Sequence record: OP123707.1
DNA length: 64,000 bases
Reading direction: 5' to 3' (one strand)
The position numbers and the translations under genes are program-made. Below the pieces are notes generated by a model. That model did not search any database. It was not told the DNA's origin and saw only the letters and a program-made list of their open reading frames with translations. The number at the start of each line of letters is the position of its first letter. The stretch's first letter is position 1. This document shows, piece by piece, positions 5,465 through 46,980 of this stretch.

Positions 5465-7657
5465 ATGGAAAACGTAAAGATATTAGAATTGGATCTCCTT
5501 GCGACAAATCCAGATAACTATATCGACGAAACACAGCCGGTAACCAACCGAACACGAGATTGGTACCGCCCGGATTACAGTCCGTTCTATGCTGAAGACT
5601 TCGAACTTTTCGATGGTCAAGGTATGTTGCTGAAACGAGGACGAGATTACGTCTTTGAATCACTAAGCGATGAGCTGGTTGGTAAGACGGGTAAACCGGT
5701 GTATCTTTTCTTCCGTATCATTGGAACGAACTTAAACAACAAAGGTTCGTACCGCATCAAATACCGCAGTGTGGGTAACACAGGTTTCCCTCGTTCGTTA
5801 ATCGGTAAGATGACAGAAGAGTTGATCAACAGCGAGTATTGGGTGGACTGGGAAACTCAAGTCCTAGGTAAACCTCAAACGTACCCAGCGTACCAGCACT
5901 GGCACGACATTGCGACGGAAGTTGCGAACTGGGATCAGTTCATCAGTTTTGCCCAAGCGCACTTGGATCATTTTACCGGTGGTCGTAAGTTACATTGGGA
6001 AGAAAACGAAGAGAAGATCGACGACGCAGAGCGCAGCTTCAGTCAACGTCATGATCGATTCTGGCGAATGTTGGACCGACACGACCAAGATTACGACAAC
6101 CCACACAAACTGGTTCGTTCTGATTTCCCTTTAGTGCATATCCCTAATTTTCCGTTGAGCACCATTCAACAAGATTTAGAAGGGAAGAGTGCGACGTCTT
6201 TCACCACCCCGCTAGGGTTGGAGACGGTAATAAAAGAACGTCGTCGTATCAACCCAGGGAACATTGCCGCTGGCCGTACCCGTTATCATTCTCCTATTGA
6301 CAACCTTGGGGTAAAACCGTACCTCAACGTCAACGTAATGAAACGCGGTAGTTGGATTAAATTCCCTAACGGTGACATGGATTTCATCACTGCTGCCGAG
6401 GGCGGCCTCTACCCAGCGAAAGTTAAGGTTCGTGATTCCAAACCGTATCTAACCGGGGTGACTTATCCATTAGAGCCTGTGTATCCTCAGGTCGGTGGTG
6501 AAGACCTCGTCATGGACCGGACCATTCGTGTCTTAGGATCAGGATTGGCGGTCAACCACCACTCTGACAACCTATCGTTGTTGTTCTACCCGAAAACAGA
6601 AAATTACGCCCATTCATCACAGACTGAGTGTTTCAAAGTCGACATGTCGGAAGTAGCGAAAGCTGCTCATTTGGGTGGTAGTTGGGTGGACAAAATTTGG
6701 TTGTTCCTAGTGGGTAACCGTTTGTTCGGGTTAGGGTTGGTGAATACGTACGCACGTCATTCCTACCGTTTGTTCTCTGCACAGACTGGTGAACTTGGGT
6801 CCAGCACAAGCATCAAGTTAATGCCACACAGCATCAACGTGGAAGATGAAGATGGGTTGTTTGGTCAACCAACGACCGCACCTAATTTGTTGGACATAAT
6901 AGTAGGTAGTGGGGCGAATGAATTCCAACAGTTCCATCACCGTTTCCCAAGCAGTGTGAAACCGCTGTTCACTAACCACATGTTGATGTTAACCGGGGAT
7001 TTAGATTTCCGTAAGGAAGATTGTTTCTTTATTAAGATCGTTTCAACTATGACTGTCAACGGAGTCGCACTTCCGGTGGAAATGTCTTGGACGTTGGATC
7101 TGAATGAGAACAAACTGCTCCGTAATATCTCGGGATCTAATGCGAGAACTTTTACGACCTTAGGAGAAATCAAAGCCTTCGATGAAATGTTGAGTAAGTA
7201 TTGTGAAGGTACCGGTAGCATCATCCCTGATTTTCAATTCACTCGAACAGGGAATCTGATTGCTAACAAAATCATCAACTTCCATTCTCAATCGACTCAT
7301 TTGAACAGTATCACTGAGTTACATTTAAAGGTAATCGGTCCGCACTTGTGGGATGATTATCTGCATAGTGGTGGGGACATTCAAAGTCCAACTTGGACGG
7401 TGAATAAGTGGGAACTTGCTTTAATGGAAACCACTCAAGTTATTTTCCGTGGTAAGTTGGAAATTCTGTATCCGCAGACTTGGGACATTCGTGATTACAT
7501 CGGTGATATGACCAGTGGGACTTTAGTCGTCTCCATCGGTTATTCAGCGGGTAAACTCAAACTAAGATTGAGTACGGGTGAATACCTTTCTCCAAAAGAG
7601 ACTTGGTTGGTTAATGTTGATTTTGATGGACAGGGTATCAGCGACGTTTGGTCATAG
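5465..7657 (+). CDS. Virion tail/baseplate structural protein, paralogue of 2143..5427
   Basis: 730 aa with the shared N-terminal domain and an H-x-x-D-x-x-NPH motif; same operon. Confidence 0.7.
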   Translation: MENVKILELDLLATNPDNYIDETQPVTNRTRDWYRPDYSPFYAEDFELFDGQGMLLKRGRDYVFESLSDELVGKTGKPVYLFFRIIGTNLNNKGSYRIKYRSVGNTGFPRSLIGKMTEELINSEYWVDWETQVLGKPQTYPAYQHWHDIATEVANWDQFISFAQAHLDHFTGGRKLHWEENEEKIDDAERSFSQRHDRFWRMLDRHDQDYDNPHKLVRSDFPLVHIPNFPLSTIQQDLEGKSATSFTTPLGLETVIKERRRINPGNIAAGRTRYHSPIDNLGVKPYLNVNVMKRGSWIKFPNGDMDFITAAEGGLYPAKVKVRDSKPYLTGVTYPLEPVYPQVGGEDLVMDRTIRVLGSGLAVNHHSDNLSLLFYPKTENYAHSSQTECFKVDMSEVAKAAHLGGSWVDKIWLFLVGNRLFGLGLVNTYARHSYRLFSAQTGELGSSTSIKLMPHSINVEDEDGLFGQPTTAPNLLDIIVGSGANEFQQFHHRFPSSVKPLFTNHMLMLTGDLDFRKEDCFFIKIVSTMTVNGVALPVEMSWTLDLNENKLLRNISGSNARTFTTLGEIKAFDEMLSKYCEGTGSIIPDFQFTRTGNLIANKIINFHSQSTHLNSITELHLKVIGPHLWDDYLHSGGDIQSPTWTVNKWELALMETTQVIFRGKLEILYPQTWDIRDYIGDMTSGTLVVSIGYSAGKLKLRLSTGEYLSPKETWLVNVDFDGQGISDVWS

Positions 7658-7668
7658 GAGAGCAGTAA

Positions 7669-10203
7669 ATGAAAATCATTAATGGTGGGATTCCGGGTAA
7701 ACCGCAAGACGCGGTGGAAATCGGTAACGTCTACGCGTTATTGGCTGAGATCGCCGCACGCCGTGGTGAACAAACCCGAGTGACGGATATAGAGACTCAG
7801 AAAGTCATCGACCGTATCACCGCCCAACAAACGTATGATTACGGGAACTTTGAAAAACGTCTTGAAGATCACGTAAAAACACACGGACTGAAACACGGGG
7901 AGAACTTAGAAACCTTAGGTATCCCTATGGTTAACGACTACCCTTTTGGTAACCGCCAAGACATTATCGATGGAGGGGTGTGGGATCATTACTTAGATCC
8001 TCGTTCTTTGATGGATGCTTTACGTGGTTGGGAGTACACCCCAGATCCAAACTTATTAGAACGTCGTAACGAATATTACACGGACACGTACTTCGAGCGT
8101 TTAACTGCATTCAATGGAAATCCTGTAACTACCGTCGCGGGGAACAGTGAATGGACTGACGTAACACCAGTTCACTTTGGTGCGGGTGTGATGGGGATAG
8201 CCAATGTTTCAGACACATTGACTTACTTACCGGTCTTGCCTTTCTATCGTAATTCTCAAATCTCAGAGAGTCAGTCTGCGGGTTTAGTGAACACCAAATA
8301 CGTGGCCTATGGTTGGAACGCCCAATCATTTACTCACACCGATGCACAAGGGGTAGTGACCTACTACATTCCGGATGATTTTAATGTGGATGTCGGTTAC
8401 CGTTTCGATCAAGCGGGAACAGCGAATAGCCTCATTAAAGAAGGAGCATGGTTGCATCAGTATGAAGATTTCAAGACTGGGGTGATTTCTACCATCTATA
8501 TTAGTACAGACGGTATCCACATTGGTGTAGCGGGAATTAAATTTAACGACACCACATTACAACTCGATACAGCTCAAAAGTTTTACCACAACAGTGTCCA
8601 ACTTACCGATCAAGTTATATTGATCCCTTGGTCTGATTTGTATCCAGGACAGACGGTCACGGTAGAACACACAGAGTCTCGTGTCTATGGTGAAATGTAC
8701 AATCCAGATAGAGAGTCGGGCGGTTCACTGTCTGTCTTTGCTAACCTTAATGTAGATGGTCAGTCTGGGTTACATATCTTTGGCTGGCATGTGCGTCCTC
8801 GCTTTGGTGACGACCCTGTGTATGATTTGATACAAGTCTTCGGTCCTGGAGACACAGTCATTGATTCATATCCAGACGATCATCCTTTCCATCCGGTGTA
8901 CGGTCGTGGGGTGTTTAAAAATGACGGAGGACACGTTAGTGCGAAACAGTACGGTCATAGAACTTACTTTATTGAACACTCACATGAGAGCCGTTCACTA
9001 AATGAGTCATTCCAAACTCGCACCCTCCCTGAACGCTACCCTGTGGTAAGTGAACAACGACTAGTGACCAACAAACACTATTCTCGATTGGGAATGCAGA
9101 TGGGTCGGATGTTTGTCAGTAACAACCGTACGGTCATTAATGGTCAAGTTCGTCCTAATGGTGAATGGACCCATTACTTGTGTTCGTACAATACCGTCCT
9201 AGGCGGTGGCACCACACACTGGTCGTACTACGCCCCTGAACGCATCTACCCAATGGCAGAAAACAAACTGCTCAGTCGTGAACTGGTAAACAGTGTAAAT
9301 GAATCCAAAACCTTTACGCTAACTGGTTTGGTGTGGTCCAACAAAAACGGTTACGAAGCCATCGGTAAAGCCAATGCCAAAGTAGGTGGGGACATCTACG
9401 GTAAACCGGCAAAACTGAAAGCGAGCGATTTAGCGAACTTCAAAGCTTCCCATGCGACGTGGTTAGCGGAACGTGATAACCTAGGCTACACCGGCGTCAT
9501 GTTGAGTCAAAATGGTGATGACTACATCGGGTTGGAAGTCCGCACAGACTATACCAACTACATGGACGTCACATTATTAGACGTGAAGCAAGATGCAGAT
9601 GGTGAATACTCCATCACCCGTATGGGGTCACCATTGGTGGTCCGTGCAGGGGAACCAGATTTACCAGCGTTGTGCAATGCTCGCTTGAATCTGATCACGG
9701 ATTATTACGTCACTTACTCAGGTGGTTCAGCTTACGTGATTGTTAAGCATCCGTTTGAACATCATCCGGCTAACTTCGAGTTTAAGATCTACGGCACGAA
9801 GTTAACGCTGAATAACGAGTATGACCCTGAGGTTAACGCTCAAGGTTTGTGTGCGTTTGAACCAGTAATCATGACCCCACTGGGTGCTTGCATGCCAACA
9901 AACGACACAGAGCCGGGTAGTGGCTTATATCGCAATGGTGCAGGGAAAACGGTGAACTTGTACGAAGGTCCTAAAAATGGACCTACTTTCTTAATGATTG
10001 ACCCGGATACTGAAGTGGTGATCAACGGTACTCCGTATGATGTTCCTCCTGGTTTAGTTGCCCGCTTTACTGCTGGCGAATTTACCCGCATCTATCTGGT
10101 CATTAAGAACGGTGTCTTAGACGCAGAAGTAGCTCAACCAGGTTTCAAACATGGTGTACTCTACGCAGTAATTGCACCTGACGGTACAGTCAATTACGAA
10201 TAA
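7669..10203 (+). CDS. Virion tail-associated structural protein
   Basis: 844 aa with a GGAG RBS. The N-terminal DHVKTHGLKHGENLETLGIPMVNDYP resembles the NPH-motif region of the two upstream paralogues; the remainder is beta-rich. Confidence 0.6.
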   Translation: MKIINGGIPGKPQDAVEIGNVYALLAEIAARRGEQTRVTDIETQKVIDRITAQQTYDYGNFEKRLEDHVKTHGLKHGENLETLGIPMVNDYPFGNRQDIIDGGVWDHYLDPRSLMDALRGWEYTPDPNLLERRNEYYTDTYFERLTAFNGNPVTTVAGNSEWTDVTPVHFGAGVMGIANVSDTLTYLPVLPFYRNSQISESQSAGLVNTKYVAYGWNAQSFTHTDAQGVVTYYIPDDFNVDVGYRFDQAGTANSLIKEGAWLHQYEDFKTGVISTIYISTDGIHIGVAGIKFNDTTLQLDTAQKFYHNSVQLTDQVILIPWSDLYPGQTVTVEHTESRVYGEMYNPDRESGGSLSVFANLNVDGQSGLHIFGWHVRPRFGDDPVYDLIQVFGPGDTVIDSYPDDHPFHPVYGRGVFKNDGGHVSAKQYGHRTYFIEHSHESRSLNESFQTRTLPERYPVVSEQRLVTNKHYSRLGMQMGRMFVSNNRTVINGQVRPNGEWTHYLCSYNTVLGGGTTHWSYYAPERIYPMAENKLLSRELVNSVNESKTFTLTGLVWSNKNGYEAIGKANAKVGGDIYGKPAKLKASDLANFKASHATWLAERDNLGYTGVMLSQNGDDYIGLEVRTDYTNYMDVTLLDVKQDADGEYSITRMGSPLVVRAGEPDLPALCNARLNLITDYYVTYSGGSAYVIVKHPFEHHPANFEFKIYGTKLTLNNEYDPEVNAQGLCAFEPVIMTPLGACMPTNDTEPGSGLYRNGAGKTVNLYEGPKNGPTFLMIDPDTEVVINGTPYDVPPGLVARFTAGEFTRIYLVIKNGVLDAEVAQPGFKHGVLYAVIAPDGTVNYE

Positions 10204-13927: not shown

Positions 13928-14212
13928 ATGAGTCAACAACAAACTGCTTACCGCGAGCCTACGTATTTGCGCGGTGCGTATAACGATATGGGAGTGATTC
14001 AACTTGACCCCAATGGATCGGAGTTAATCAAAGTTGAGTATTCTCGAATTCAATATCAGTGGCAGGCCAGTGTTTACGTCAACAACATCTGTAAAGGCTA
14101 CGTAACCTTTGGCATGAACGGAGAGCGTATCATCAGTACCTTTGCCCAAGGCTTCGGTGATGACATGATCGCGGAAACGTCCATCCACAATATCGTTAAC
14201 GGCATTCATTAA
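13928..14212 (+). CDS. Hypothetical protein (early)
   Basis: 94-aa ORF with AAGGA RBS, directly downstream of the early motif. Confidence 0.7.
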   Translation: MSQQQTAYREPTYLRGAYNDMGVIQLDPNGSELIKVEYSRIQYQWQASVYVNNICKGYVTFGMNGERIISTFAQGFGDDMIAETSIHNIVNGIH

Positions 14213-14271
14213 TAAGACTTGAAGCGTGGGGTGGGTCGTCCATCCTGCGGTTCTTTATTTGGAATTTGTTT

Positions 14272-14721
14272 ATGTCAAAGAGAAAGTTAAATGTTGTTCC
14301 TCTTATTCAAACCGGAGGAATACATAAAGAAGGAGCTTTATGGTTGAGCGTCGATTATAACCTCGGTTACGACGTAAACTTGGACTGCGCTCATACCCAC
14401 ATAAACTTTATCGTGGGCAAAGATTCGGCGTGGGTACATGAAGGCAAAATCATCCGTACGTTAGAAGCAGGATGGGTGCATCAAAATGGTTTCCCAGACG
14501 ACCCGTACAATCAAGTCATAGATGAATTCCTCGATGCCATCACTGGTAAAGAAGTAAGAATCATCGATGTGGGTCTTGATCACCAACAAGAATTTAAAGA
14601 CATGATTCGCCCTCTGATGGAGTCAGTAAAGAACCATCAAAACGATTACGTTAATAAACAGATCAGAAACGATCTGTACAACTTTCGTTTTAACAGTCAA
14701 TTCAACAAAACACTTAATTAG
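14272..14721 (+). CDS. Hypothetical protein
   Basis: ORF in operon order; ATG at 14272 is preferred over the track's 14266. Confidence 0.65.
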   Translation: MSKRKLNVVPLIQTGGIHKEGALWLSVDYNLGYDVNLDCAHTHINFIVGKDSAWVHEGKIIRTLEAGWVHQNGFPDDPYNQVIDEFLDAITGKEVRIIDVGLDHQQEFKDMIRPLMESVKNHQNDYVNKQIRNDLYNFRFNSQFNKTLN

Positions 14722-25552: not shown

Positions 25553-25564
25553 ACCTATATTACT
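25553..25564 (+). promoter_or_regulatory. Putative early promoter ACCTATATTACT
   Basis: Exact copy of the 13842 motif, upstream of the chaperonin gene. Confidence 0.75.
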
Positions 25565-33023: not shown

Positions 33024-33479
33024 ATGAAAACTTCTTTAGTAACAGCAATTCAAGGTCTGGTTAGTAAGCAGCAACCTGAAGTATTGGAAGGTGACTTCAA
33101 TGTCGACCTAGACACAATACAACAGAACTGCGACTACCCGGACCGTTTTACTGCTGAAGGGTTCTTAAACGGTAAACGTATTCCGTTGGCTTGGAAACGT
33201 GTTAGCTTCACGGCTCTGTTAAACTCTGTTTCACAAGGCTTTGTTGCTCGTGATGACGCGGACCAGGAAGGTGTGTTTTATGATGGTAAGATCATGCACC
33301 ACTACATCGCTGTTCGCCCTAACCACAACCTGGACGACGTTAACCGCATCTTAGGATCCCAATTTACAAAAGACCAATTGCTCTTTAAACCGGAGCGAAT
33401 GGAAGGACGATGGGTATTAGACCACCCATGTTACTACGGACGTATATTTACTCAAGTCTTGCTTCCTAAAGCGAGCTAG
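33024..33479 (+). CDS. Stand-alone paralogue of the N-terminal domain of 29121..30632 (probable virion protein)
   Basis: WKRVSFTALLNS vs WSPGDLVTILNT; AVRPNHNLDDVNRILGSQFTKDQL..LDHPCYYGRI vs VVKDVSTIEEIQELLGFEFEPGEL..IDSPIVEGTM. Confidence 0.6.
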   Translation: MKTSLVTAIQGLVSKQQPEVLEGDFNVDLDTIQQNCDYPDRFTAEGFLNGKRIPLAWKRVSFTALLNSVSQGFVARDDADQEGVFYDGKIMHHYIAVRPNHNLDDVNRILGSQFTKDQLLFKPERMEGRWVLDHPCYYGRIFTQVLLPKAS

Positions 33480-33499
33480 CTATGTAAGGTTTTACAACC

Positions 33500-34021
33500 A
33501 TGAAACAAGAACAAATATTCAATAAAGTGGTTTCAGATTTCAGCGCAGGCGTGTTAGGTTTCCGTAATGGTAATCAGACACAGGCTTTAAACAACATCGC
33601 CAATCATCTTCGATCGGCACGCCATGGGCTACGACGCAGCATTCAACCTATGGCAGGTAAACAACCTCTTACGGTGAGCAATTACTTGGAGATCTCGATT
33701 GACCTTAAGTCTTTTCGTACGGATCTTTGCAGTAAGCTGTCGCTAGGTGAGGGTGTTAACCTTCGTGAGTTACCAATCAAATCTCCACTTACTGAAGTCT
33801 TGCGTGAAGACTACTTCCGACACGTTTGCATTGAAGCTTATCGTAAAGCTAAACGCGAAGAAGAACACTACTTTACGGGAGAGACGTTGCATGAGCGTTT
33901 TATCGACGAGCTCAACAACCAACTCCCAGAAGGTGCACGCTTGGGCTTAAGTGGTTCGATCCATCGCCCTCATACTCCACACACCAGTTTCGTATTGAAG
34001 CTGACTGATCTCGTGGAGTAA
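33500..34021 (+). CDS. Hypothetical protein
   Basis: 173-aa ORF with AAGG RBS, co-directional cluster. Confidence 0.65.
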   Translation: MKQEQIFNKVVSDFSAGVLGFRNGNQTQALNNIANHLRSARHGLRRSIQPMAGKQPLTVSNYLEISIDLKSFRTDLCSKLSLGEGVNLRELPIKSPLTEVLREDYFRHVCIEAYRKAKREEEHYFTGETLHERFIDELNNQLPEGARLGLSGSIHRPHTPHTSFVLKLTDLVE

Positions 34022-34025
34022 GCTT

Positions 34026-34514
34026 ATGAACACCAATCTTTCAATTGATCTCGGAATCGAGGAAGGAGATTCCACGAAGTACGAAGTCGGTCAGTATTGG
34101 TGTGTCGTAAAAAGAGCAGGTGGTCAATTGACCGGAACGGTTGGTTCCTCTGGAAAGGGGAACCAGCTTACTAAATCTATTGCTTTTTCAATATTTCGTC
34201 CTGTTAGCGACGATGACCTCATAGCGGTATATAGTGAGTGGCTAACAAACGTCAAGTTGTACTACACACACTCAAAGCGAACGTATCGATTCGTTTTAAC
34301 TGTACTCAAGGCTTTACTTTCCAATTACACCCAACGCATTTGGCCTATCGTTTATCGTAATCGCAGCACCTCATTGTTGTTAACCGATAATCGCATGGTG
34401 ACCATCAAAATAGATGGACAACGTCCAACCTCGATGGCACTCGAACACTGGAATCCAGCTATACTGGAACATCGCTTATTCCCCTACGCCAAATTAAAAC
34501 AAACTCTTATTTAA
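34026..34514 (+). CDS. Hypothetical protein
   Basis: 162-aa ORF, 4 nt after the previous stop. Confidence 0.65.
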   Translation: MNTNLSIDLGIEEGDSTKYEVGQYWCVVKRAGGQLTGTVGSSGKGNQLTKSIAFSIFRPVSDDDLIAVYSEWLTNVKLYYTHSKRTYRFVLTVLKALLSNYTQRIWPIVYRNRSTSLLLTDNRMVTIKIDGQRPTSMALEHWNPAILEHRLFPYAKLKQTLI

Positions 34515-34524
34515 GGAATTTCCC

Positions 34525-35046
34525 ATGACAAACATTATTGAAACTATCGAACCTTTTGTAGGTCGCACCTTTATGTACTCCACCATGACTGAGTCTTCTA
34601 TCTCTGCTCATTATGATGGTCACAAAGCCCACCTAATGATCCAGATGGATGACGGGAAAACAGTCCGTACGATTCGTCGCCAATATTCCCGCAAGTTCCT
34701 AGACCAGTTCGCTGGCTTTGGTAAATGGAACGAAAACAATTTAACTCAAGTCTTGTTAGGGATTTACATTCTGGATCCTAAGGGTCTTTACCAATTAACT
34801 CGAGCGCCTCGTGAATGTTTATCAGCACTCATCGATACGTATCGTAAAGACTTCATGTTGACAGGCACGCTGTTCTACATGACCCTCGAACTCACCAAGG
34901 ACACATTGAAAGTCACCAGTCAACGTCAACCAGATATTTATATACAAACTCGCAGCATTAAAGAAGTCACTAAAACCACGTACGCTCCAGTGATGACGCT
35001 GGGGTTTAATCATACTCCTCGTCGTCGTGTTCACGTGGAAGCATAA
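34525..35046 (+). CDS. Hypothetical protein
   Basis: 173-aa ORF with AAGGA RBS. Confidence 0.65.
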   Translation: MTNIIETIEPFVGRTFMYSTMTESSISAHYDGHKAHLMIQMDDGKTVRTIRRQYSRKFLDQFAGFGKWNENNLTQVLLGIYILDPKGLYQLTRAPRECLSALIDTYRKDFMLTGTLFYMTLELTKDTLKVTSQRQPDIYIQTRSIKEVTKTTYAPVMTLGFNHTPRRRVHVEA

Positions 35047-37908: not shown

Positions 37909-39264
37909 ATGACTAAGTCTACTAAACCTAACCATGATCTTTGGAAACTGTTTATTTACCTAGCTGAAGGTCTGAACGAAATGACGTTCTTCTTGGAAGG
38001 TACAGATGACGAAGGCATGCCAACACTTAACCACACGGGTGTTGCTCACGAAGACATGCACATCACTATCCAACCTCACGCTTACTTACCAATGACCCAC
38101 ATCCACATGGACATCAACCTTCCGGTGGAACTAACCGATGCACTAGCGGGCGATCTAACAAACAATCCAGTAGCGATTCGTTTACGCGATTACCTAACGG
38201 AACGTGGTAGCATCGATTACTTGGTCTACAATGAAATGGCACCGAACATCTTGAAAGAGATCGCTGACATTCAAGCGGTACTGCACGAACAAGAGCGTCC
38301 TAACTTGGAAGCGGTTCAACAAATGATTCACTACCTCAGCAACTTGATGATGAATGAACTTGATGCAAAAGTAGCTAAGAAAGCGAACCGTTACTACCCA
38401 CTGGCAATCAATCGTCTTCCTCGTATTACGGTAGATGAACCGTCAGAAGAATGGATCGAACGTACTTTCGGTGACATGATGTCGGGTGACGTATTCCACG
38501 CTGGTCATGTAGTGGTTCGTAACGCGAAACGCGTAGGTCGTCGACTAGGCAACATTGCTGAGATGGTTAACCGTTGGGGTAAAGAGACTCAAACCGAAAA
38601 AGACTTCGATCTGTGGTTCTCTCTCAACATTGAAGATCATAAAATCTCTCTTGGCTTAGACCGTCAACCTTACCAATCGGAAGAGAGCTTTGTCATCGAA
38701 CGCACACCAGTAAACATGGACGAATGGGATGACGCTGTTGATCTAGGTTTCATTCACTCAATCCAAAAAGAGATTGACGAGATGAACATCACGATCGCTA
38801 ACCTGTTGAACTACAACACAGGTTACGAGATGCTGAATAAGGAAATCGAACAGCTTTACATCCGCAACATCCATCACCCGGTAGCGAAACATACTGTCCG
38901 TGTTTGGGAGTTCGATGATCTGTGTCCATCAGGTCGTGCTAAGATTGATGAAGAGATCGCAGCAATCATGCAATTGGTTGAAGACAAAGCTACTGAGCTA
39001 GACGCTGAAGTGAAGTTGGACATTTCTAATATGTACCTGCATCAGAAAGCTGAAGGTGAAAACTTCATTCTGAATCAAGAGCATCAGGTCGTGGCAAAAC
39101 GTTGTCAGACTTACGCAGGTACGTTCTTCGATTCTCTGCAACAGTACCTGTACGATGTGGAAACGCCGTTGTTCGGTCCTTACACTCACGTAACTCCAGC
39201 AGACCTAGGTAATCAAACAGTCATCTCTGAAACTGACCTTCTGGACGCTCCTACTCTACATTAA
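37909..39264 (+). CDS. Hypothetical protein
   Basis: 451-aa ORF with AAGGA RBS, divergent from the helicase. Confidence 0.75.
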   Translation: MTKSTKPNHDLWKLFIYLAEGLNEMTFFLEGTDDEGMPTLNHTGVAHEDMHITIQPHAYLPMTHIHMDINLPVELTDALAGDLTNNPVAIRLRDYLTERGSIDYLVYNEMAPNILKEIADIQAVLHEQERPNLEAVQQMIHYLSNLMMNELDAKVAKKANRYYPLAINRLPRITVDEPSEEWIERTFGDMMSGDVFHAGHVVVRNAKRVGRRLGNIAEMVNRWGKETQTEKDFDLWFSLNIEDHKISLGLDRQPYQSEESFVIERTPVNMDEWDDAVDLGFIHSIQKEIDEMNITIANLLNYNTGYEMLNKEIEQLYIRNIHHPVAKHTVRVWEFDDLCPSGRAKIDEEIAAIMQLVEDKATELDAEVKLDISNMYLHQKAEGENFILNQEHQVVAKRCQTYAGTFFDSLQQYLYDVETPLFGPYTHVTPADLGNQTVISETDLLDAPTLH

Positions 39265-39317: not shown

Positions 39318-39608
39318 ATGTCAGCTCTATTAGCAGAACTGAACGCGCCAAGTAAAGTGAGTCGTAATGACGACATTGTACTTCGAGGTAAATTCGATGG
39401 TTTAGCTCAACCGCACTTAGTGAAGGTTTTCTTTAATGATGAAGAAATTGACGGTCATGTGTACACTGACCAACAAGGTTTCTTCCAAGCGGAATTCCCT
39501 GCTAAAGTAAACAAGGCGGGTAACTACCCTATCCGTATTGTAATGGTAGAGAATACTGAATCAGGTACAGAAGTCTCTGGTGAAACAACGATTCGTGTGA
39601 CTCGTTAA
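39318..39608 (+). CDS. Single Ig-like domain protein
   Basis: APSKVSRNDDIVLRG..VKVFFN..FQAEFP..AGNYPIRI..TTIRVT beta-sandwich pattern; AGGAG RBS; flanked by a late motif and a terminator (~39618-39649). Confidence 0.6.
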   Translation: MSALLAELNAPSKVSRNDDIVLRGKFDGLAQPHLVKVFFNDEEIDGHVYTDQQGFFQAEFPAKVNKAGNYPIRIVMVENTESGTEVSGETTIRVTR

Positions 39609-39684
39609 TTTAAGTTAATATCCTGTACCCTCATCGGGTACAGGATATTACTTTATTTTTTTTGCTTTTAGTAAATAAAAACAG

Positions 39685-39695
39685 ACCTATATTAC
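39685..39695 (+). promoter_or_regulatory. Putative early promoter ACCTATATTAC
   Basis: Recurring motif heading the 39755-46284 gene array. Confidence 0.72.
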
Positions 39696-39754
39696 CTATG
39701 TGTATGACCATCATACATAACCCATTTACTTCATTTAAAAGAAGGACAAACACC

Positions 39755-40543
39755 ATGTCAAACTACATCAAAGATTTTATCAGCGAAGGCACTTACTTTG
39801 AAGAAGGCCAACCAATCAACTTCATGTTCTCAGTTATTGATGCTGAGGGTGCGAGTGTCACTATTACCGCGGAAGGCAACCAAGTCCTCAAAGAAGACGT
39901 GACTGACTACAAACAAAAGTTTCGAGTCTCCTTCCCGGCAAATAAAGAATCAACTCAAGTTGAAATCAGCGTGGATTACTTAACGGGTCAGATCGATAAG
40001 AAGACCTTACGGTTCCAAGCCGTGGATCCTACCGTCTACCGATCACAACAGTTGATCAACATCGGTTTCAAAATCGAAGACATCAATAAACTGATTTCGG
40101 TTTTCACACACAGTGCTTGGTCTGAGTGTTTGAAACGTCCAATGGAAGAACAAGAGCGACGCGAACTATTAGCGTTTGCAACGCCGTCCTTTGAATATTG
40201 CGTCGAACTGTTTCAAGACGAGATTCCTTACTTGGAAATCAAGCTAACCAATCATTCTGGCGAGACACATACGGTTCGCACGGAATTAAAAGGTTGGGGA
40301 GTAACCGCGTATTCTCTATTGGGACAAATAGCCACAGAAGCGGGACTTATTTTAGCAAAAGACCTTTCCCATAAGTCTACCCTTAATGTGGTCTTGGCGT
40401 TGGCGAAAGACCCGTGTTACTCGGACTCGGTAAAAGAAGCACTGGTGGCGACCTTCACTTTAGCGTCACCGAAACCGATTATTGGGATGCGCCGTATCGT
40501 AAAGACCACCGACCTCTTCAAAAACGAAGAATCATCTATCTAA
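39755..40543 (+). CDS. Hypothetical protein with N-terminal Ig-like domain
   Basis: ATG 39755 with AAGGA RBS; VTDYKQKFRVSFPAN resembles YTDQQGFFQAEFPAK of 39318. Confidence 0.6.
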   Translation: MSNYIKDFISEGTYFEEGQPINFMFSVIDAEGASVTITAEGNQVLKEDVTDYKQKFRVSFPANKESTQVEISVDYLTGQIDKKTLRFQAVDPTVYRSQQLINIGFKIEDINKLISVFTHSAWSECLKRPMEEQERRELLAFATPSFEYCVELFQDEIPYLEIKLTNHSGETHTVRTELKGWGVTAYSLLGQIATEAGLILAKDLSHKSTLNVVLALAKDPCYSDSVKEALVATFTLASPKPIIGMRRIVKTTDLFKNEESSI

Positions 40544-40562
40544 CTTTAAATAAGGAAATACC

Positions 40563-42053
40563 ATGGATAAGCATTTAAGAATCTTCATGAACAACATGAT
40601 CGCACTAACCGATGAAATAGCGAGAAACACATCTTGTCGCTCCCCGTACTTAAACATGCTCAAAGCCAACTTTGAAGACGCGTTACTTCCGGTCGAGTTC
40701 CAGTGCATCAACGACGTCAACCAAGTGGGGATTATTCGATATGGATTCACTAACGGTCAATTCCCTGAATGGGCTGAGCGTGATCTCCCTGACTCAATCA
40801 AAGCGTGGGAAGAATTGATCAACAACAGTGAAGATAGCAGATGGTTCATTGAAGAAAAACATGTGGTTTTTGATCTGGGTTGGTGTAAGGCCCGTCTGAA
40901 CACAGGTTTCAGTGGCTGGCATTACCATCTGTCCTTCCCGGATCAAGAGATCACAACCCTTCAAAAATGGTTGGAACCTAACAATAAGTTAACGAATGAA
41001 TTCAACCGTCATTTGGCTAACTTGGTTGGGATTGAACATCCGCTGTTTGAAGAAGATGTGATTAAAGAACACGGTGCAGCGGTTCAAAAATTCCGTGATG
41101 GGGTGTTGCATATCTTAAACACCTTCGTCAAACAAGACCGTCTTCCTTTCTTTACCAACAACCGTATAAAAGTTTCTTACGGTAATGTGGATAAATCCAT
41201 GCCACAAACTGGTGAAGAACAAAGCGATGAGTTCTTCTTATCCTTACACTACGGGGAGTGGCACATCCGTGTATTCCAAGATGGTGAGGTGGGAGTTCAG
41301 CGCTACGTCTCAGGGAACTGGTCAATCTTTGATTTGAACAACCCTAAAGTGGCGACACGCCGTTTGATGGGGCATTTGTCTCAGGTACTCGATGTCGATG
41401 TCGATGTGGAATCAGAGCTCGTTCATCCTACTTTAAGTGCGATTGAGGCTTGTAGTGATGCTCGTCCTGATTATGGGTTCTTCCCAGCCGCGAGCTTCAC
41501 CACTAATGTGACAGATGAAACCAGTTTGTCCATGAGCAAAACCACCTCGGTGTACAGCAAAAACCCACTTCCAGAAGATCGTCTGGTCGACCTTAAAAAG
41601 GTATGCAGTCTCTTAAGTAAATCCGCCAACTTGAAAGGAGCGCAAACGGATAAGCTATTTAGATTGAGCATGAAGGTGGGGGCAGAGCACGTGATTGATT
41701 TTGCACGTGATTATGATTTGGATTTCGAAGTAATGGGCGCGCACCGCTTTACTGTTTACGAACCGAATAATAACGAACCTCTGTTCCGTTGGTCGGTGAA
41801 CCCTGGAAACATCGAAGCACTCCGTAAAACACTGTCCACATTAATCGGAGCCGAGGTGGAGTATCTTCATTCTTACGAAGGTGATCTAGAAGAACCGTTG
41901 GATAACTTACGTAAGCTTCAGAATGACCATTCCACGACGTTCTACATTCCTAACCCACCTAGATCTTTTGATGTGGACCGCATCAATGCTGCGATCGCTA
42001 ACATCAACAAACTGGGTACTTTGAAAAAGTTTGTTTCTTGCATCTTACTGTAA
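40563..42053 (+). CDS. Hypothetical protein
   Basis: 496-aa ORF with AAGGA RBS. Confidence 0.75.
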   Translation: MDKHLRIFMNNMIALTDEIARNTSCRSPYLNMLKANFEDALLPVEFQCINDVNQVGIIRYGFTNGQFPEWAERDLPDSIKAWEELINNSEDSRWFIEEKHVVFDLGWCKARLNTGFSGWHYHLSFPDQEITTLQKWLEPNNKLTNEFNRHLANLVGIEHPLFEEDVIKEHGAAVQKFRDGVLHILNTFVKQDRLPFFTNNRIKVSYGNVDKSMPQTGEEQSDEFFLSLHYGEWHIRVFQDGEVGVQRYVSGNWSIFDLNNPKVATRRLMGHLSQVLDVDVDVESELVHPTLSAIEACSDARPDYGFFPAASFTTNVTDETSLSMSKTTSVYSKNPLPEDRLVDLKKVCSLLSKSANLKGAQTDKLFRLSMKVGAEHVIDFARDYDLDFEVMGAHRFTVYEPNNNEPLFRWSVNPGNIEALRKTLSTLIGAEVEYLHSYEGDLEEPLDNLRKLQNDHSTTFYIPNPPRSFDVDRINAAIANINKLGTLKKFVSCILL

Positions 42054-42104
42054 TTGAATCAAAGGGGAGTTAATAGCTCCCCCATTATTAAAGGATTTAT
42101 AACA

Positions 42105-42959
42105 ATGAACAATTTGGCTACTGAAATCATCTACACTGACCACACTCGTAAATCCGCTAACGGTATTTATATTTACGCGGACTCAAGTTTGTATGGCAAT
42201 CGATTAAACGTCATTGTTTCAGATGACGAAACGGAACAAACCGAGTTGGGGATGGAAATCGATAACGTGGATTGCGGCTTAACCGTTTACGATGAAATCT
42301 TAGAGACCAACATCGTACTGGCTACGATCTCCACCCGCAGTTTAAGTAAACTGAGTGACAACTATTTCATCAAAGTTCGTTTGTTTGATAATGAAGATCA
42401 GTTGGTGGGAGAAGCGGGCCCATTTTACGCGACCATTGATGAAGAGATTGACGTGGGTTCTATCATCGTTGAACGTCGCACTAAATCGTTGTTGCGTTTA
42501 AGCACAATGTTGAGTGCGTTGGACTACATGGTGGGTGAAGAACAAGTGACCGTAATGGACACTTACATCGGTGGATGTCACTTTGAACTGAACATTACTG
42601 AGGGCAACTACGTCGCCACCATCAGCGAAGAACTGGACATCCAGTTGGAAACTATTCGTGCGTTAACTTCGGTAGATTTGATCCGTAAGTTGAACGACAG
42701 TGACCACGGTGGGTTCATACTAGACTCGGGATTGATCTTTGATCGATTCATTAAACCGGTTCAGTTTGGCGAAGACCGATGTTTAGCTAACCGTTATCGA
42801 ATGATGGAGGACTTTACTTACAAAAACATCGACATGGTGTACACGTTCGGTCTAGCGAAAACAAAGCGAGATTCTGCGTTCCTAAAAGAACTTAACTCAC
42901 GTCCTTACAAATACGCTTTTGTAAAAGAAAAGGAATCGGTGGATGAATCAGATGTCTGA
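42105..42959 (+). CDS. Hypothetical protein with N-terminal Ig-like domain
   Basis: ATG 42105 with AAGGA RBS; beta-rich N-terminus with DNYFIKV strand. The C-terminal RLS..L..G..FE pattern is shared with 43844. Confidence 0.6.
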   Translation: MNNLATEIIYTDHTRKSANGIYIYADSSLYGNRLNVIVSDDETEQTELGMEIDNVDCGLTVYDEILETNIVLATISTRSLSKLSDNYFIKVRLFDNEDQLVGEAGPFYATIDEEIDVGSIIVERRTKSLLRLSTMLSALDYMVGEEQVTVMDTYIGGCHFELNITEGNYVATISEELDIQLETIRALTSVDLIRKLNDSDHGGFILDSGLIFDRFIKPVQFGEDRCLANRYRMMEDFTYKNIDMVYTFGLAKTKRDSAFLKELNSRPYKYAFVKEKESVDESDV

Positions 42960-43266
42960 ACCTTTTGAAATTGTCGACTTCCAAGATTTCTTAGCCAAAG
43001 AACTCAGTAAGTTGGGGCAGCCTTCTAAATACACTACGTTACCGGAGTTGTATGAGGAGTATTCGGTTCCTTTTGGGAAATCCATGTTAGGTTACTTAAA
43101 ACAGTTTGATGTGGATTCTCGTTGGTTACACGACGCTTACGGATTAGATTTCCGTAAGAACAAGAAAGGGAATTGGGACGTGTTTTTGAATGAGATGGTG
43201 GGAGAGTTTCTTCATTTCAATTCAGGGGACCAACCAATCATGACTTTAACTTTAACTGGTGAATAA
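42943..43266 (+). CDS. Hypothetical protein
   Basis: 107-aa ORF overlapping the previous gene end; AAGGA RBS. Confidence 0.65.
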   Translation: MNQMSEPFEIVDFQDFLAKELSKLGQPSKYTTLPELYEEYSVPFGKSMLGYLKQFDVDSRWLHDAYGLDFRKNKKGNWDVFLNEMVGEFLHFNSGDQPIMTLTLTGE

Positions 43267-43326
43267 GTTTTAATGGAGTGGTCAATTAATAGGTCACTCC
43301 TTATTTTTTTAATCATAGGACGTATT

Positions 43327-43851
43327 ATGAAAGTCGATCTTCGACCAGCCGAGGCGTTGTTCTTAACGTTAGATGCCGCGGTTAAAATGCTAAGCAACCC
43401 TGAGTCCAAATTGAAAGAACTCGTGATGGAATCCCATCAACGTAAATACAACATGGTCTTGGTGGATGGGTTCAATCCTAAAGAGTGTTGGTTCCGTGAT
43501 TTTAACATCACGTTGTGTTTGTCGTATGACTCTATACGACAAGAACGCATTGCTTTATTTACACTCCGAGATGAGGACTTAGCGAACCACGAAAATGTCA
43601 TCAGCATTGACATCAGTGACAACACACGTCCTTTGTCGGAACACTGGGAAGCGTTGTTGCGCATCATGGCGTATCATTACCCAGAAACTTTACAACGTAT
43701 TGCGGAGTCCGGGGATCACATCGATCGACACCGCGTGTACGACGAAATAGACCGAGAACGCGGTCTTTACAAATTTTGTGATTTCCAAAAATCGCAGTAC
43801 GAATCTTTAGTAAGTTTATTTACAGACTTAGAGGAACCAGAACATGACTAA
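43327..43851 (+). CDS. Hypothetical protein
   Basis: ATG 43327 with AGGA RBS; HWEALLRIM resembles QFEALLRLL of 44652. Confidence 0.65.
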   Translation: MKVDLRPAEALFLTLDAAVKMLSNPESKLKELVMESHQRKYNMVLVDGFNPKECWFRDFNITLCLSYDSIRQERIALFTLRDEDLANHENVISIDISDNTRPLSEHWEALLRIMAYHYPETLQRIAESGDHIDRHRVYDEIDRERGLYKFCDFQKSQYESLVSLFTDLEEPEHD

Positions 43852-44671
43852 ACGTTTATTCTCATTCACCACCAGCAAAGAACTCCACCATCGTGGTGAA
43901 ACCATTTCCGTTCACCCTAACCACCGTACCTTAGGTGAATTGGAAAACTCTTACGAACTCCATGCCGAAGTTCTTATCAACGGGGAACCGATTGGTGGTG
44001 GAATGGGGTTGCATGATATCAACTACTGTCTTATGGATTACGAAGAAGATCTATTGGGTAAGACTTACCAACTGAACGTTCGCATCAAACGCGGGGATGA
44101 GATTGTCCGTGTCAGTGATACGATGGAGATGGAGTGTGGCACTCTATTGTCGGTCGAGACGCAAGACACTATGGCGCTAGCTTCGGGCTACGATTGGATC
44201 AGTCGTTTATCTCGCGCACTGGCGTTGATTCATGAGTCTTACAGTAAACGTGAAGACGAAGACCGAATTAAGTTATTCGGTTGGGAAGTTGGTCCTTACT
44301 ACTTTGAGTTTTACTGGGGTGGTGAGCAGATGGGTGTGAAAGGCATTGAGCTGGATGTTTCTCCAACTCACAACATGGATAACATCACCTCGTTCTTCAT
44401 TGACTCTTCTAGTATTCTCTCTGTTTCTCGTAGCTTCAATGAGATTTTCTATCATGAAGTGAAAGCGTGGATGGTTCATCCGGCGTTCCGTATTATGATG
44501 GTGGAACAACCCATCGGGAATGACCTTATTCACCACTACCAATTCTTAGTGGCGATTATCGCGGCCGATTCCCCAGCGTTATCTCTTCCAATGGGTCTGC
44601 GAACACTGAGTCGTGTAGCTTCTGAAGAATCAAGAAAAATTGGAGTGACTAATGGATATCAAGCTGGCTAA
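43844..44671 (+). CDS. Hypothetical protein with N-terminal Ig-like domain
   Basis: ELHHRGETISV..AEVLING..KTYQLNVRI strand pattern; GAGGA RBS. Confidence 0.6.
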   Translation: MTKRLFSFTTSKELHHRGETISVHPNHRTLGELENSYELHAEVLINGEPIGGGMGLHDINYCLMDYEEDLLGKTYQLNVRIKRGDEIVRVSDTMEMECGTLLSVETQDTMALASGYDWISRLSRALALIHESYSKREDEDRIKLFGWEVGPYYFEFYWGGEQMGVKGIELDVSPTHNMDNITSFFIDSSSILSVSRSFNEIFYHEVKAWMVHPAFRIMMVEQPIGNDLIHHYQFLVAIIAADSPALSLPMGLRTLSRVASEESRKIGVTNGYQAG

Positions 44672-45317
44672 CCCGACGGTACAGTTGGGTTCGTATTTGC
44701 GTTTCCGGTTATCGAACTTTGAAAGCAATAAACGTACCACGGTAAATGCGGGGTTGGCGTTACATGGTCAGGGTCGTCCAAAAGCGTGTTCCATACTGCG
44801 TTACCCAATCAATGGACAATACGTTTGTTTCTTGGATACTTCTGGGTTGCCTATCGGGAATCATAAGTTAACCCTATGGCCAAGCACCGGGTATTCTGAA
44901 CACGTCAATGTTCACTTCGATGTACTGATCCAAACTCCGATGAGCCATGAACTCGGGGCCCAACTAAAACGACTTTACTGGTATTTAGAACAATGGTTAG
45001 AACGGGTGGAGGAACTGGATACCACGATAGTGTTGTCCAGACTCAAGATCACTCCTAATCCGGTAACTAAAATGTTGGTGTGCAGTCTCCCGAACTCTCA
45101 GTATTACGTGGAACTTTATCCATCCGAATTCCTTACTCAGTTTGAAGCGTTGTTGCGTTTACTGGGTTCGCGATTCGATACGTTTGAGAAAGGATTCACC
45201 GATACCGATTTTGTAGAGTTACGTGCTCACTTACCGGGGTTAGGGACGTTGAACATTCCTAAAAATTTGAATGGGAATCGACTCGTTTCTATCTTCAATC
45301 GTTTTAACTTGGCTTAG
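44652..45317 (+). CDS. Hypothetical protein with N-terminal Ig-like domain
   Basis: NPTVQLGSYLRF..YVCFLDTSGLPIGNHKLTL..VHFDV strand pattern. Confidence 0.6.
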   Translation: MDIKLANPTVQLGSYLRFRLSNFESNKRTTVNAGLALHGQGRPKACSILRYPINGQYVCFLDTSGLPIGNHKLTLWPSTGYSEHVNVHFDVLIQTPMSHELGAQLKRLYWYLEQWLERVEELDTTIVLSRLKITPNPVTKMLVCSLPNSQYYVELYPSEFLTQFEALLRLLGSRFDTFEKGFTDTDFVELRAHLPGLGTLNIPKNLNGNRLVSIFNRFNLA

Positions 45318-45326
45318 GGGTGCAAA

Positions 45327-45950
45327 GTGTTAATCAAGAAAATCGGAAGCATCGTGGATCTTCCATGCAACATCAAGGACTATCGTAAAGGGTCTATCCT
45401 TCAAACGGAAGGTGGAGAGTTGGTCATTCAAGTCGCGATGGATAATCGTCCTGTTTACTTCCATTTCCCTACATCTGTGTGTGGTGACCCTGAGTTGTCT
45501 TTACTCTACATTCGCGGTGTCGCTAACCATTGTCCTGAAGCGGAAGTTTATGGTGACTTTTCTCCAGAGGTGGTGAGTTTTCTAAGAGACCACGATCTTT
45601 ACGTGAACATCATTCCTCCAGCGGTCTTCCATGTGATCAAACAGTTTAAGTTGGTCCACACTGATGACTTGGAATGGTTGAACATGGACTGTGGGTCGAA
45701 GGTGGGTTTCGTTAACCGTATCGATGGACATATCGTGGTGTCTTACGATGAAATGCGAGATTTTCCAGTCACTATCGTTGGGACAGGGGTGCTGTCGGAC
45801 TACGTAAGTTTGATCAATGCGTTAACCAATCTCAAAGTCTACACCAAGAGCTCCACGGTGTATGGGGTGTTCCCATTAGGACTCCTTCGTCAATTAAAAG
45901 AAAAAGGTATTCCTTTTGAAACGTTAGAGGAAAGCTCTGATGAATACTGA
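45327..45950 (+). CDS. Hypothetical protein with two copies of a ~100-aa alpha/beta domain
   Basis: GTG start. Halves align (RPVYFH..LLYIRGVANH..VYGDF..FLRDHDL / FPVTIV..SDYVSLINAL..VYGVF..QLKEKGI). Confidence 0.6.
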   Translation: MLIKKIGSIVDLPCNIKDYRKGSILQTEGGELVIQVAMDNRPVYFHFPTSVCGDPELSLLYIRGVANHCPEAEVYGDFSPEVVSFLRDHDLYVNIIPPAVFHVIKQFKLVHTDDLEWLNMDCGSKVGFVNRIDGHIVVSYDEMRDFPVTIVGTGVLSDYVSLINALTNLKVYTKSSTVYGVFPLGLLRQLKEKGIPFETLEESSDEY

Positions 45951-46284
45951 AGCTCCTGTTCGTTGGAAGGGGGTGGAGTTCTGGACGTATGACCCCGAGC
46001 GTGAAGACGATCGCAGAGAGATCCGTGGTTTGGACATCGATAACTTCATCTATTGCGGGATGGGAGAAGACACACACGAAGAACGAGTCTATCTTTATCT
46101 GGCGGATGAAGAACGTCGTATCCCGGTAGTGATTTGGGAATACATGGGACGAGCATCTTTAGAACGATACCTAGGATGTTTGGCTCAGGTCGATCGAGAG
46201 CGTATCGTGGTGTTTGTTCCGAACCTCATTGCTTTTACTGTGATGTTAGATGACATGAACATTCCGTACCAGCCTTGTGCATAA
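45940..46284 (+). CDS. Hypothetical protein, third copy of the 45327 domain
   Basis: IPVVIW..LERYLGCLAQ..IVVFV..MLDDMNIPY. Confidence 0.6.
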   Translation: MNTEAPVRWKGVEFWTYDPEREDDRREIRGLDIDNFIYCGMGEDTHEERVYLYLADEERRIPVVIWEYMGRASLERYLGCLAQVDRERIVVFVPNLIAFTVMLDDMNIPYQPCA

Positions 46285-46290
46285 TGCAGA

Positions 46291-46334
46291 CATAATCCTA
46301 CCCTCCCTGCCTTTCGGTGGGGAGGGTAGTTATG
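46291..46334. terminator. Bidirectional terminator
   Basis: CTACCCTCCC/GGGAGGGTAG stem between convergent genes. Confidence 0.8.
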
Positions 46335-46347
46335 CTGTTTATTTTTT

Positions 46348-46980
46348 TTATTGCTGACCACGAATTTGTTCTTCGAGTAATGCAATATATTTCCGGTCTT
46401 CGATCTGTTCTTTTTCTAACTGTTTGATGCGGATAGCGTCAGAAGCAGACTTAGTCACTTGGGACTTACGTTTGTTTTCAAAGACTTCGGCTTGTTCACG
46501 GGAGACGTAGGATTTGGTTGGAACGGTCCCAACAAACACTTCTGGGTCGTCAACACCCGTGATGGCTTTGGTTTGGTCTTTAAGGAACACGCGGTAAGTG
46601 TTCAGCTGATCTTTCAACGACGGTGGTACCGCACCCAAGTCTACGATGAAACAGAGACGCTCATAAAGCACCCCATCGATCAAAGGGAATGACTTGAAGT
46701 AAGTAGAAGGAATGTGTAACGTCGGGAGACCATCGGCTACTAACGTCACCACCACACCTTTGGATGACTCTAAGTCGTTCATTAAACTGGCGGATTCGGC
46801 AGACGTGAGTCCGACTGGGTTACCCACTAACAGATGCGTGTTAACTTTAGCGATGTTCAGTTCATCGACGGTACGGAGGGCCTCTACCGTGTACATCAGG
46901 TTGGGATCACAAACCTGATCAAACGGCTCCAATGCCTCAAATGAACCACTCGCTCCTATTTCAGGAATGATGTTATTCAT
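46348..46980 (-). CDS. Conserved phiKZ-like protein, probably virion structural
   Basis: 210 aa, coupled to the upstream virion-type gene; C-terminal coiled coil. Confidence 0.55.
   Translation of the reverse strand: MNNIIPEIGASGSFEALEPFDQVCDPNLMYTVEALRTVDELNIAKVNTHLLVGNPVGLTSAESASLMNDLESSKGVVVTLVADGLPTLHIPSTYFKSFPLIDGVLYERLCFIVDLGAVPPSLKDQLNTYRVFLKDQTKAITGVDDPEVFVGTVPTKSYVSREQAEVFENKRKSQVTKSASDAIRIKQLEKEQIEDRKYIALLEEQIRGQQ

Follow-up and report, generated by a model that had tools for sequence, protein, structure and literature searches.

Early operons of phiKZ-type phages, which are transcribed by the virion RNA polymerase, have a common promoter core (TATATTAC) set within an extended consensus, with small genes of unassigned function downstream. 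Lineage-specific early operons of this kind are typical of chimalliviruses. Immunoglobulin (Ig)-like folds, which are very common, are also known from phages, where the virion Ig domains (decoration or tail-fibre Ig domains, Big_2 and FN3, for example in T4 Hoc) are appended to late structural proteins. Here, we analyze a locus in which a module of the same fold class appears to head a series of small proteins encoded behind an early-promoter-type motif. The locus lies in a 64,000-nucleotide stretch (hereafter, the window) of sequence record OP123707.1, in which record position equals window position plus 62,000. The window matches, at 100% identity, Vibrio phage phiKT1028 (Tidunavirus, Gorgonvirinae, Chimalliviridae), which has been described as a nucleus-forming chimallivirus (PMC10587174). 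The genes concerned are designated A–K (Table 1); every one of them is annotated as encoding a hypothetical protein, and in a comparison with PHROGs each constitutes its own small PHROG without an assigned function. While the promoter resembles that of phiKZ-type early operons, the gene content of the C–K operon is specific to the Gorgonvirinae.

A first-pass annotation, made from the sequence alone, had proposed that this region encodes an array of cytoplasmic proteins that combine an N-terminal Ig-like module with variable C-terminal domains. The open reading frames (ORFs) that it named, and the peptide motifs that it quoted, were all present where it had placed them. Overall, the best explanation of the results presented below, in which our confidence is evenly balanced, is that C–K is an early operon of Ig-fold paralogues that act as binding proteins. 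The structural and evolutionary part of this explanation we hold with considerable confidence, while the binding mechanism is put forward only tentatively. We found no paper in the literature that describes a paralogue family having a cytoplasmic Ig-like front domain and encoded in an early-type operon, in agreement with the initial view that the family is new.

The gene C product provided the best-defined fold. An exhaustive HMMER search among 1.84 billion cluster representatives (E ≤ 1e-3) matched only six clusters, and the AlphaFold2 model built from those six sequences had a predicted local distance difference test (pLDDT) score of 85.7 and a predicted template modelling (pTM) score of 0.79. 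In this model, eight strands (residues 5–90, with a pLDDT of ~86–94) are followed by helices at 92–105 and 107–127, four strands at 135–177, four helices at 181–235, and a disordered tail. When the N-terminal domain was compared with the PDB using Foldseek, it matched Ig-like sandwiches (2kl6, 3idu, 2xwx, 5axh, 2ox5) over 96–108 columns with a root-mean-square deviation (rmsd) of 2.4–5.0 Å, a probability of 1.0 and a target template modelling (TM) score of up to 0.68; the matched sandwich domains are those of CARDB (2kl6, 3idu), GbpA, dextranase, Wzt and SoxYZ proteins. With its eight strands and its superposition on solved domains, the modelled domain belongs to the Ig-like (E-set or CARDB-like) class of two-sheet sandwiches, which have seven to nine strands.

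The top PDB match of the whole C model was Bacillus subtilis Spo0M (5cl2; 281 columns, E = 4e-5, probability 0.99), a cytoplasmic protein in which a beta-sandwich precedes a second domain; the alignment covers both parts of C, but the TM-score is only 0.24–0.25 and the rmsd 16 Å. Membership in the Spo0M (arrestin-like) family was rejected, as a Pfam search gave no Spo0M match and the TM-score lies well below the required 0.5, and the similarity may be confined to the separate domains. Matches were also obtained to the appendage ('ear') domains of the clathrin adaptors alpha- and beta2-adaptin (1w80, 1e42, 2iv9), in which a sandwich together with an alpha/beta platform forms a cytoplasmic protein-binding hub. 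These matches were weak (E ~3e-3, probability 0.5–0.75, TM-score ~0.19), with no sign of common descent. Adaptin appendages and Spo0M, each combining a sandwich with an alpha/beta domain, are the nearest functional analogies for the family, but not its relatives.

The protein encoded by gene H is, as modelled, built in the same order. Two word-index protein searches yielded only four close sequences of this family, and the AlphaFold2 model computed from four sequences shows the same succession of elements as C. The best non-orthologous match of the C model in BFVD was A0A513PWD4 of phage 2 TSL-2019 (259 amino acids (aa); 12% identity, 247 columns, E = 5.7e-10, TM-score 0.45). Because the H model matches this protein at 35% identity, we consider A0A513PWD4 an orthologue of H. 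Reciprocally, the second BFVD match of the H model, with E = 1.8e-7 over 277 columns, was the C orthologue of VP4B. Given these reciprocal Foldseek matches and the common element order, the models show C and H to be full-length structural paralogues, rather than one Ig module carrying two payloads.

The far C-terminal helices of C and H differ. Conservation within the H family peaks at residues ~205–262 (44456–44630), where many positions are invariant (among them W, P, F, R, E, P, G, H and Y); this stretch is modelled at very low confidence, has no visible counterpart in C, and may be a family-specific functional site. Additionally, Q2Z0T6 of Pseudomonas phage EL (229 aa) appeared in the Foldseek BFVD lists of both C and H, with near-full-length alignments of ~250 columns but at a low probability (0.33–0.35), and may be a very distant family relative in another chimallivirus.

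The free-standing gene B product had been described in the first-pass annotation as the bare Ig module, a description consistent with the Big_7-like pattern of its family. Six of its seven orthologues match Pfam Big_7 (PF17957) at E ≤ 5, the best of them at 7.2e-5; the window copy itself scores 15.2 bits (E = 0.035), below the gathering cut-off of 24.1 bits. Moreover, among 94 window ORFs, B was the best non-self match of the hidden Markov model (HMM) of the C N-terminal domain (E = 0.0014, collinear). Using hhalign on family alignments of seven and nine sequences, B was aligned with C (residues 1–79 against 1–76, P = 0.002) and with H (P = 0.006). Two more Ig modules had been proposed in the ORF at 29121, for which sequence searches gave no Pfam or HMM support.

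Bacterial Ig-like domains of the Big_7, CARDB and E-set types are mostly extracellular or found at the cell surface, whereas the array proteins have no export signal: consistent with the initial description, no signal-peptide-like N-terminus was detected in any of them, and no clear transmembrane segment. Their net charge ranges from -4 to -23 (C, -9), with the exception of I (+3).

The early-promoter-type motif that had been noted ahead of gene C was confirmed. Its core, CTATATTAC, is invariant in an alignment of seven phages and occurs four times in the window, against an expectation of 0.23. The looser form TATATTA[CT] is present in six copies, all on the + strand and each inside an extended AT-rich consensus. 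For five of these six copies, the first ATG to open an ORF of 60 aa or more lies 10–83 nucleotides downstream, and no such ATG was found after the copy at 25556. For the copy at 39688, that first ATG belongs to the long frame at 39662, and the annotated start of C lies 67 nucleotides downstream of the motif. TATATTAC is the published core of phiKZ early promoters, and the extended form fits the consensus of 201phi2-1 (PMC7058600, Table 2); such motifs proved to be early promoters wherever transcript profiling tested them (PMC7598289). The early (virion RNA polymerase) promoters of chimalliviruses are recognized by a conserved AT-rich motif that has a TATATTAC core and recurs, on the coding strand, ahead of operons; all of these features were found here.

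The boundaries of the unit were likewise recognizable. Pairing in the stem of the terminator that closes the A–B unit is kept by compensatory changes in the seven-phage alignment. The stem of the hairpin between F and G is similarly kept in most of the eight to nine phages aligned, with a conserved loop (ATTRATAG-like); this element may be an internal terminator, an attenuator, or an RNA-processing site within the early operon. Because of the promoter motif, this internal hairpin and the flanking terminators, we predict a single bounded transcription unit, consisting of the promoter, C-D-E-F, the attenuator, G-H-I-J-K, and the terminator. The early transcript probably carries, at its 5' end, the short hairpin found immediately 3' of the promoter core. 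By eye, several of the other motif copies also have a short inverted repeat ~5–10 nucleotides downstream, so that a 5'-terminal stem-loop may be typical of early transcripts in this phage group.

To what extent the block is conserved was determined by comparison with related phages and metagenomic sequences. A tblastn search placed genes B, C and H in one common set of 15 phage records, corresponding to eight isolates of Tidunavirus and Aphroditevirus, while no homologues were found in phiKZ, 201phi2-1, EL, Miami, or RisingSun. A search of IMG/VR returned only the known isolates, and two JGI metagenome scans returned none. The order A–K is identical in six related isolates and in the 244-kb metagenomic scaffold L014; overall, synteny of the block is strict across eight isolates and two metagenomic contigs. 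In Klebsiella phage Miami (8644–10647 of L016) and Erwinia phage RisingSun (3605–5495 of L017), two chimalliviruses that are not members of the Gorgonvirinae, on the other hand, the convergent neighbor gene comes straight after the helicase gene and the A homologue, and B–K are missing; in Miami, the annotation equates this neighbor with the gene that occupies the DUF7194 position in the Vibrio phages, while in RisingSun it is identified by size and position only. Since the A homologue adjoins the neighbor directly in both phages, B–K is, as judged from these sequences, a ~7-kb Gorgonvirinae-specific block between A and the DUF7194 gene. The slot between A and the gene at the DUF7194 position may be a general site for accessory genes.

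Within the subfamily, the block diverges rapidly. The identity of phiKT1028 to its relatives is 18–53% for C–K and 41–59% for B, while the flanking genes are more conserved (A, 54–65%; DUF7194, 70–80%; helicase, 74–86%). Copy-number variation in relatives, suggested in the first-pass annotation as something to look for, was not detected: each gene has one orthologue, in constant order, apart from the absence of B in the 47-kb contig L015, between A and C (6536–8822). The duplications are older than the subfamily. In scaffold L014, J (13983–14330) is half-length, encoding 115 aa instead of 207 aa. B and half of J are, therefore, dispensable in some lineages.

A module is also shared between neighboring genes. 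In seven of nine phages, E encodes ~360 aa, the last ~95 of which are homologous to F (hhalign probability 97.3%, E = 1.9e-11), while E of phiKT1028 and of L015 is without this C-terminal F-type module. The PHROGs assignment had already hinted at a link between the modules of E and F. The F-type module can be both fused and free in one operon, as seen in L002 (9372–10764) and its equivalents in L003–L007 and L014.

Table 1. Genes and predicted regulatory elements in and around the C–K operon of phiKT1028 (window positions)
Feature	Position	Strand	Description
A	37909-39264	+	Gene upstream of the block; conserved in other chimalliviruses
B	39318-39608	+	96 aa; free-standing Big_7-like Ig domain; last gene of the upstream A-B unit, before the terminator
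Intrinsic terminator	39616-39660	+	15-bp stem and T-run, closing the A-B unit (terminator scan)
Early-promoter-type motif (GTAAA..ACA..CTATATTAC....GTG)	39671-39702	+	Core CTATATTAC at 39687-39695, upstream of C
Short hairpin	39701-39717	+	Just 3' of the promoter core; inverted repeat kept with sequence changes in relatives
C	39755-40543	+	262 aa; Ig-like sandwich 1-90 (nucleotides 39755-40024), two helices 92-127, four-strand sheet 135-177, helical bundle 181-235, disordered tail
D	40563-42053	+	496 aa; operon member, fold undefined by searches; no detectable paralogue link
E	42105-42959	+	284 aa; probable paralogue of H
F	42943-43266	+	107 aa; small module, in relatives also fused onto the end of E
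Hairpin and T-run between F and G	43275-43310	+	Divides the operon into a C-F and a G-K part (terminator scan)
G	43327-43851	+	174 aa; no Ig module
H	43844-44671	+	275 aa; beta N-domain 6-98 (nucleotides 43844-44137), helices 104-133, four strands 142-186, then helices
I	44652-45317	+	221 aa; beta-rich N-terminal ~95 aa, then helix, strands, helices
J	45327-45950	+	207 aa; operon member
K	45940-46284	+	114 aa; final gene of the operon
Terminator	46299-46349	+	GC-rich hairpin and T-run 3' of K, on the side of the convergent DUF7194 gene; identified by inspection of the sequence
DUF7194 gene	46348	convergent	Neighbor downstream of K; conserved in other chimalliviruses
TATATTA[CT] copies	13845, 20752, 25556, 30723, 39688, 56010	+	Motif scan of the window

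The first-pass annotation had attributed the N-terminal Ig-like module to at least four genes, C, E, H and I. For C this is borne out by a confident model, and for H it is supported by the matching strand pattern of a low-confidence model and by the reciprocal Foldseek matches; E and I, whose matches are weak but consistent, probably start with the same module. In hhalign, E and H align collinearly from residue 1 onward for 148 columns (P = 0.013), and I aligns with B at P = 0.03. A profile merged from the N-terminal domains of B, C and H, with 20 decoy windows as a control, scored 19.7 for the N-terminal domain of E (P = 0.005) and 14.8 for that of I (P = 0.039), the decoy maximum being 12.5. 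The sub-threshold Pfam matches of I are of Ig type (Lmo2445-like_C in two of seven orthologues, E = 0.007, and Ig_ADGRF3), and it had further sub-threshold matches, to the 2B4 Ig domain and to a surface protein, in PDB sequence-profile searches, which gave nothing significant for the five families submitted. In both proteins, crude secondary-structure calls are beta-rich over the first 95 residues (75% strand in this stretch of I) and then give helix, strands, and helices; these Chou-Fasman-type propensities, which agree with the models at 54–64% of residues and give the opposite state at 13–15%, count as weak support.

The explanation competing most closely with ours, although improbable, is that only B, C and H are related, and that the beta-rich N-termini of E and I are unrelated or convergent, so that the family of four would be partly a pattern-matching artefact. 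The HMMs of the E and I N-terminal domains found no other family member among the window ORFs, and orthologues of E and I were absent from the top 50 Foldseek BFVD matches of the C and H models; both results speak for this explanation. It accounts less readily for the length and collinearity of the alignments, above all that of E with H, for the merged profile ranking both N-terminal domains above all 20 decoy windows, for the Ig-type matches of the I family, and for a predicted element order in E and I that fits C and H. The all-versus-all HHalign comparison, which the first-pass annotation had recommended as a check, is ambiguous in this respect: its matches are collinear, but their P values (0.005–0.04) are marginal and were reached by reversed sequences. 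Such reversed decoys equalled the scores in three to five of 121 comparisons, and hhalign P values alone, therefore, do not prove homology.

This marginal sequence homology is one of several points that weigh against an early operon of Ig-fold paralogues acting as binders. The membership of E and I is drawn from sequence comparisons, the H model has a pLDDT of only 57, and the Foldseek TM-scores of the C–H pair are only 0.26–0.45. Additionally, we infer the early timing of the C–K operon solely from its promoter motif, and the fast divergence of the proposed binders could reflect weak constraint instead of an arms race.

Evidence linking the other genes of the operon to this family was more limited. 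A relationship of G to I had been suspected from the similar peptides FEALLRLL and WEALLRIM; hhalign did recover a short common helix around them (P = 0.002–0.01), but over only 19–32 columns, a weak match. G may be the rear alpha/beta module alone, without the Ig part. D had no Pfam, PDB, or NCBIfam match, and its hhalign comparisons with the other families gave P ≥ 0.13. A relationship between J and K that was suspected by eye found no support (hhalign P = 0.47). BLASTP comparisons of all 11 genes against each other gave no matches, and revealed no paralogy for the four upstream genes (33024–35046, 151–173 aa).

Slightly less probable than a smaller family is that the array proteins are packaged in the virion, as late inner-body, ejected, or decoration proteins similar to the paralogous head-protein arrays of phiKZ-like phages. 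PhiKZ inner-body paralogue families do exist, and the array proteins are likewise acidic, fast-evolving, and paralogous. Moreover, the RisingSun homologue of the convergent neighbor is annotated as a putative virion structural protein, and B, which lies outside the early unit, resembles a small decoration-type Ig protein. Arguing against packaging are the early-promoter motif directly upstream of C and the terminators that bound the unit, and the block is absent from other chimalliviruses that share the virion core genes. None of the array proteins is similar to a PHROG with a structural annotation, and searches of PHROGs and with tblastn and HMMER found no sequence relationship to phiKZ-type inner-body or head proteins. 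The virion-surface Ig domains of phages are of the same fold class, and among the Foldseek matches in BFVD were tail proteins as well as phage proteins of the Ig-like, Big-1 and FN3 types, some of them large proteins of pTD1 and VP4B. With no structural domain, no structural PHROG, and an early-promoter motif upstream, the module was not assigned to the virion-surface Ig domains of phages, on the strength of these sequence features.

The first-pass annotation itself had suggested a further, and in our view quite unlikely, explanation, in which a common Ig docking module delivers varied effector payloads to one scaffold, for instance the nuclear shell, an early vesicle, or the capsid. That several operon proteins begin with Ig-like domains would be expected of such a system, and so would the differences between C and H in their far C-terminal helices and in the conserved H stretch (~205–260) that has no counterpart in C. 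The variable payloads themselves, however, did not materialize: C and H share their whole architecture, beyond the Ig part, and no enzyme or effector domain was detected in any array protein in Pfam, PHROGs, NCBIfam, and PDB sequence searches. Furthermore, the Ig domains rank with the regions of these proteins that have diverged most, which is unexpected if all of them dock on one common site.

Equally unlikely is that the rear domain is a PUR/Whirly-type module (four strands, then a helix) that lets the family bind RNA or DNA of the host or the phage early in infection, since, although the C model matches the PUR repeats of human PURA (149 columns, E = 9e-4, probability 0.98–0.99) and Arabidopsis WHY1 in Foldseek, and chimalliviruses encode the Whirly-fold RNA-binding protein ChmC, the TM-score on the query is 0.16–0.24 with an rmsd of ~15 Å, C has a single four-strand unit and not paired repeats, all of the proteins except I are net acidic, and ChmC itself was not seen in PDB sequence or fold searches, so that membership in this fold was rejected.

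For the operon of Ig-fold paralogues, we propose the following scheme. Within the block, ancient tandem duplications together with the shuffling of modules would have given rise to a paralogue family with an N-terminal Ig-like sandwich of ~90–100 aa, a helical hairpin, a four-strand antiparallel sheet, and a helical bundle. This architecture is displayed by the C and H models, is probable for E and I, and is possibly represented by G without its Ig part. The proteins would be made within minutes of infection and would stay soluble in the cytoplasm; they are acidic, and no catalytic domain was detected in them. Each might then bind a different host or phage partner via the variable loops of the Ig sandwich together with the alpha/beta platform. 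The proteins would accordingly be early host-takeover or counter-defence binders, rather than enzymes or carriers of separate effectors.

Two irregularities in the records of related phages concern the array genes. In Aphrodite1 (MG720308.1 / NC_042100.1), only 71% of the B query is matched, while near-identical phages match fully, and the region matching C has no annotated gene; these oddities could be due to an annotation gap or to one or more breaks in the record. In phiKT1019 (L004, 12009–12686), the I orthologue as annotated lacks 27 N-terminal aa, and tblastn with a full-length relative gives one continuous frame that starts upstream, so that the true start probably lies upstream of the annotated one.

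Until their shell has been built, nucleus-forming jumbo phages have to get through the first minutes of infection unprotected by it, and the early genes of that interval are mostly uncharacterized and lineage-specific. Speculatively, and with less confidence than we place in the binding mechanism as such, the operon could be a phage-made set of intracellular binders, in which one scaffold, an Ig-like sandwich joined to a platform, was duplicated and the copies diversified so that each neutralizes a different host factor, of defence or housekeeping, before the phage nucleus is built. If this is true, the Ig fold would be serving in the cytoplasm and early in infection, a use as yet undescribed for phages. 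The block indicates, in any case, that Ig-like modules in phages are not limited to virion surfaces. As a clearly delimited unit with a rapidly evolving paralogue family whose fold is of a protein-binding type, it also offers a concrete candidate set of early host-interaction factors in vibriophages that are being tried in shrimp aquaculture.

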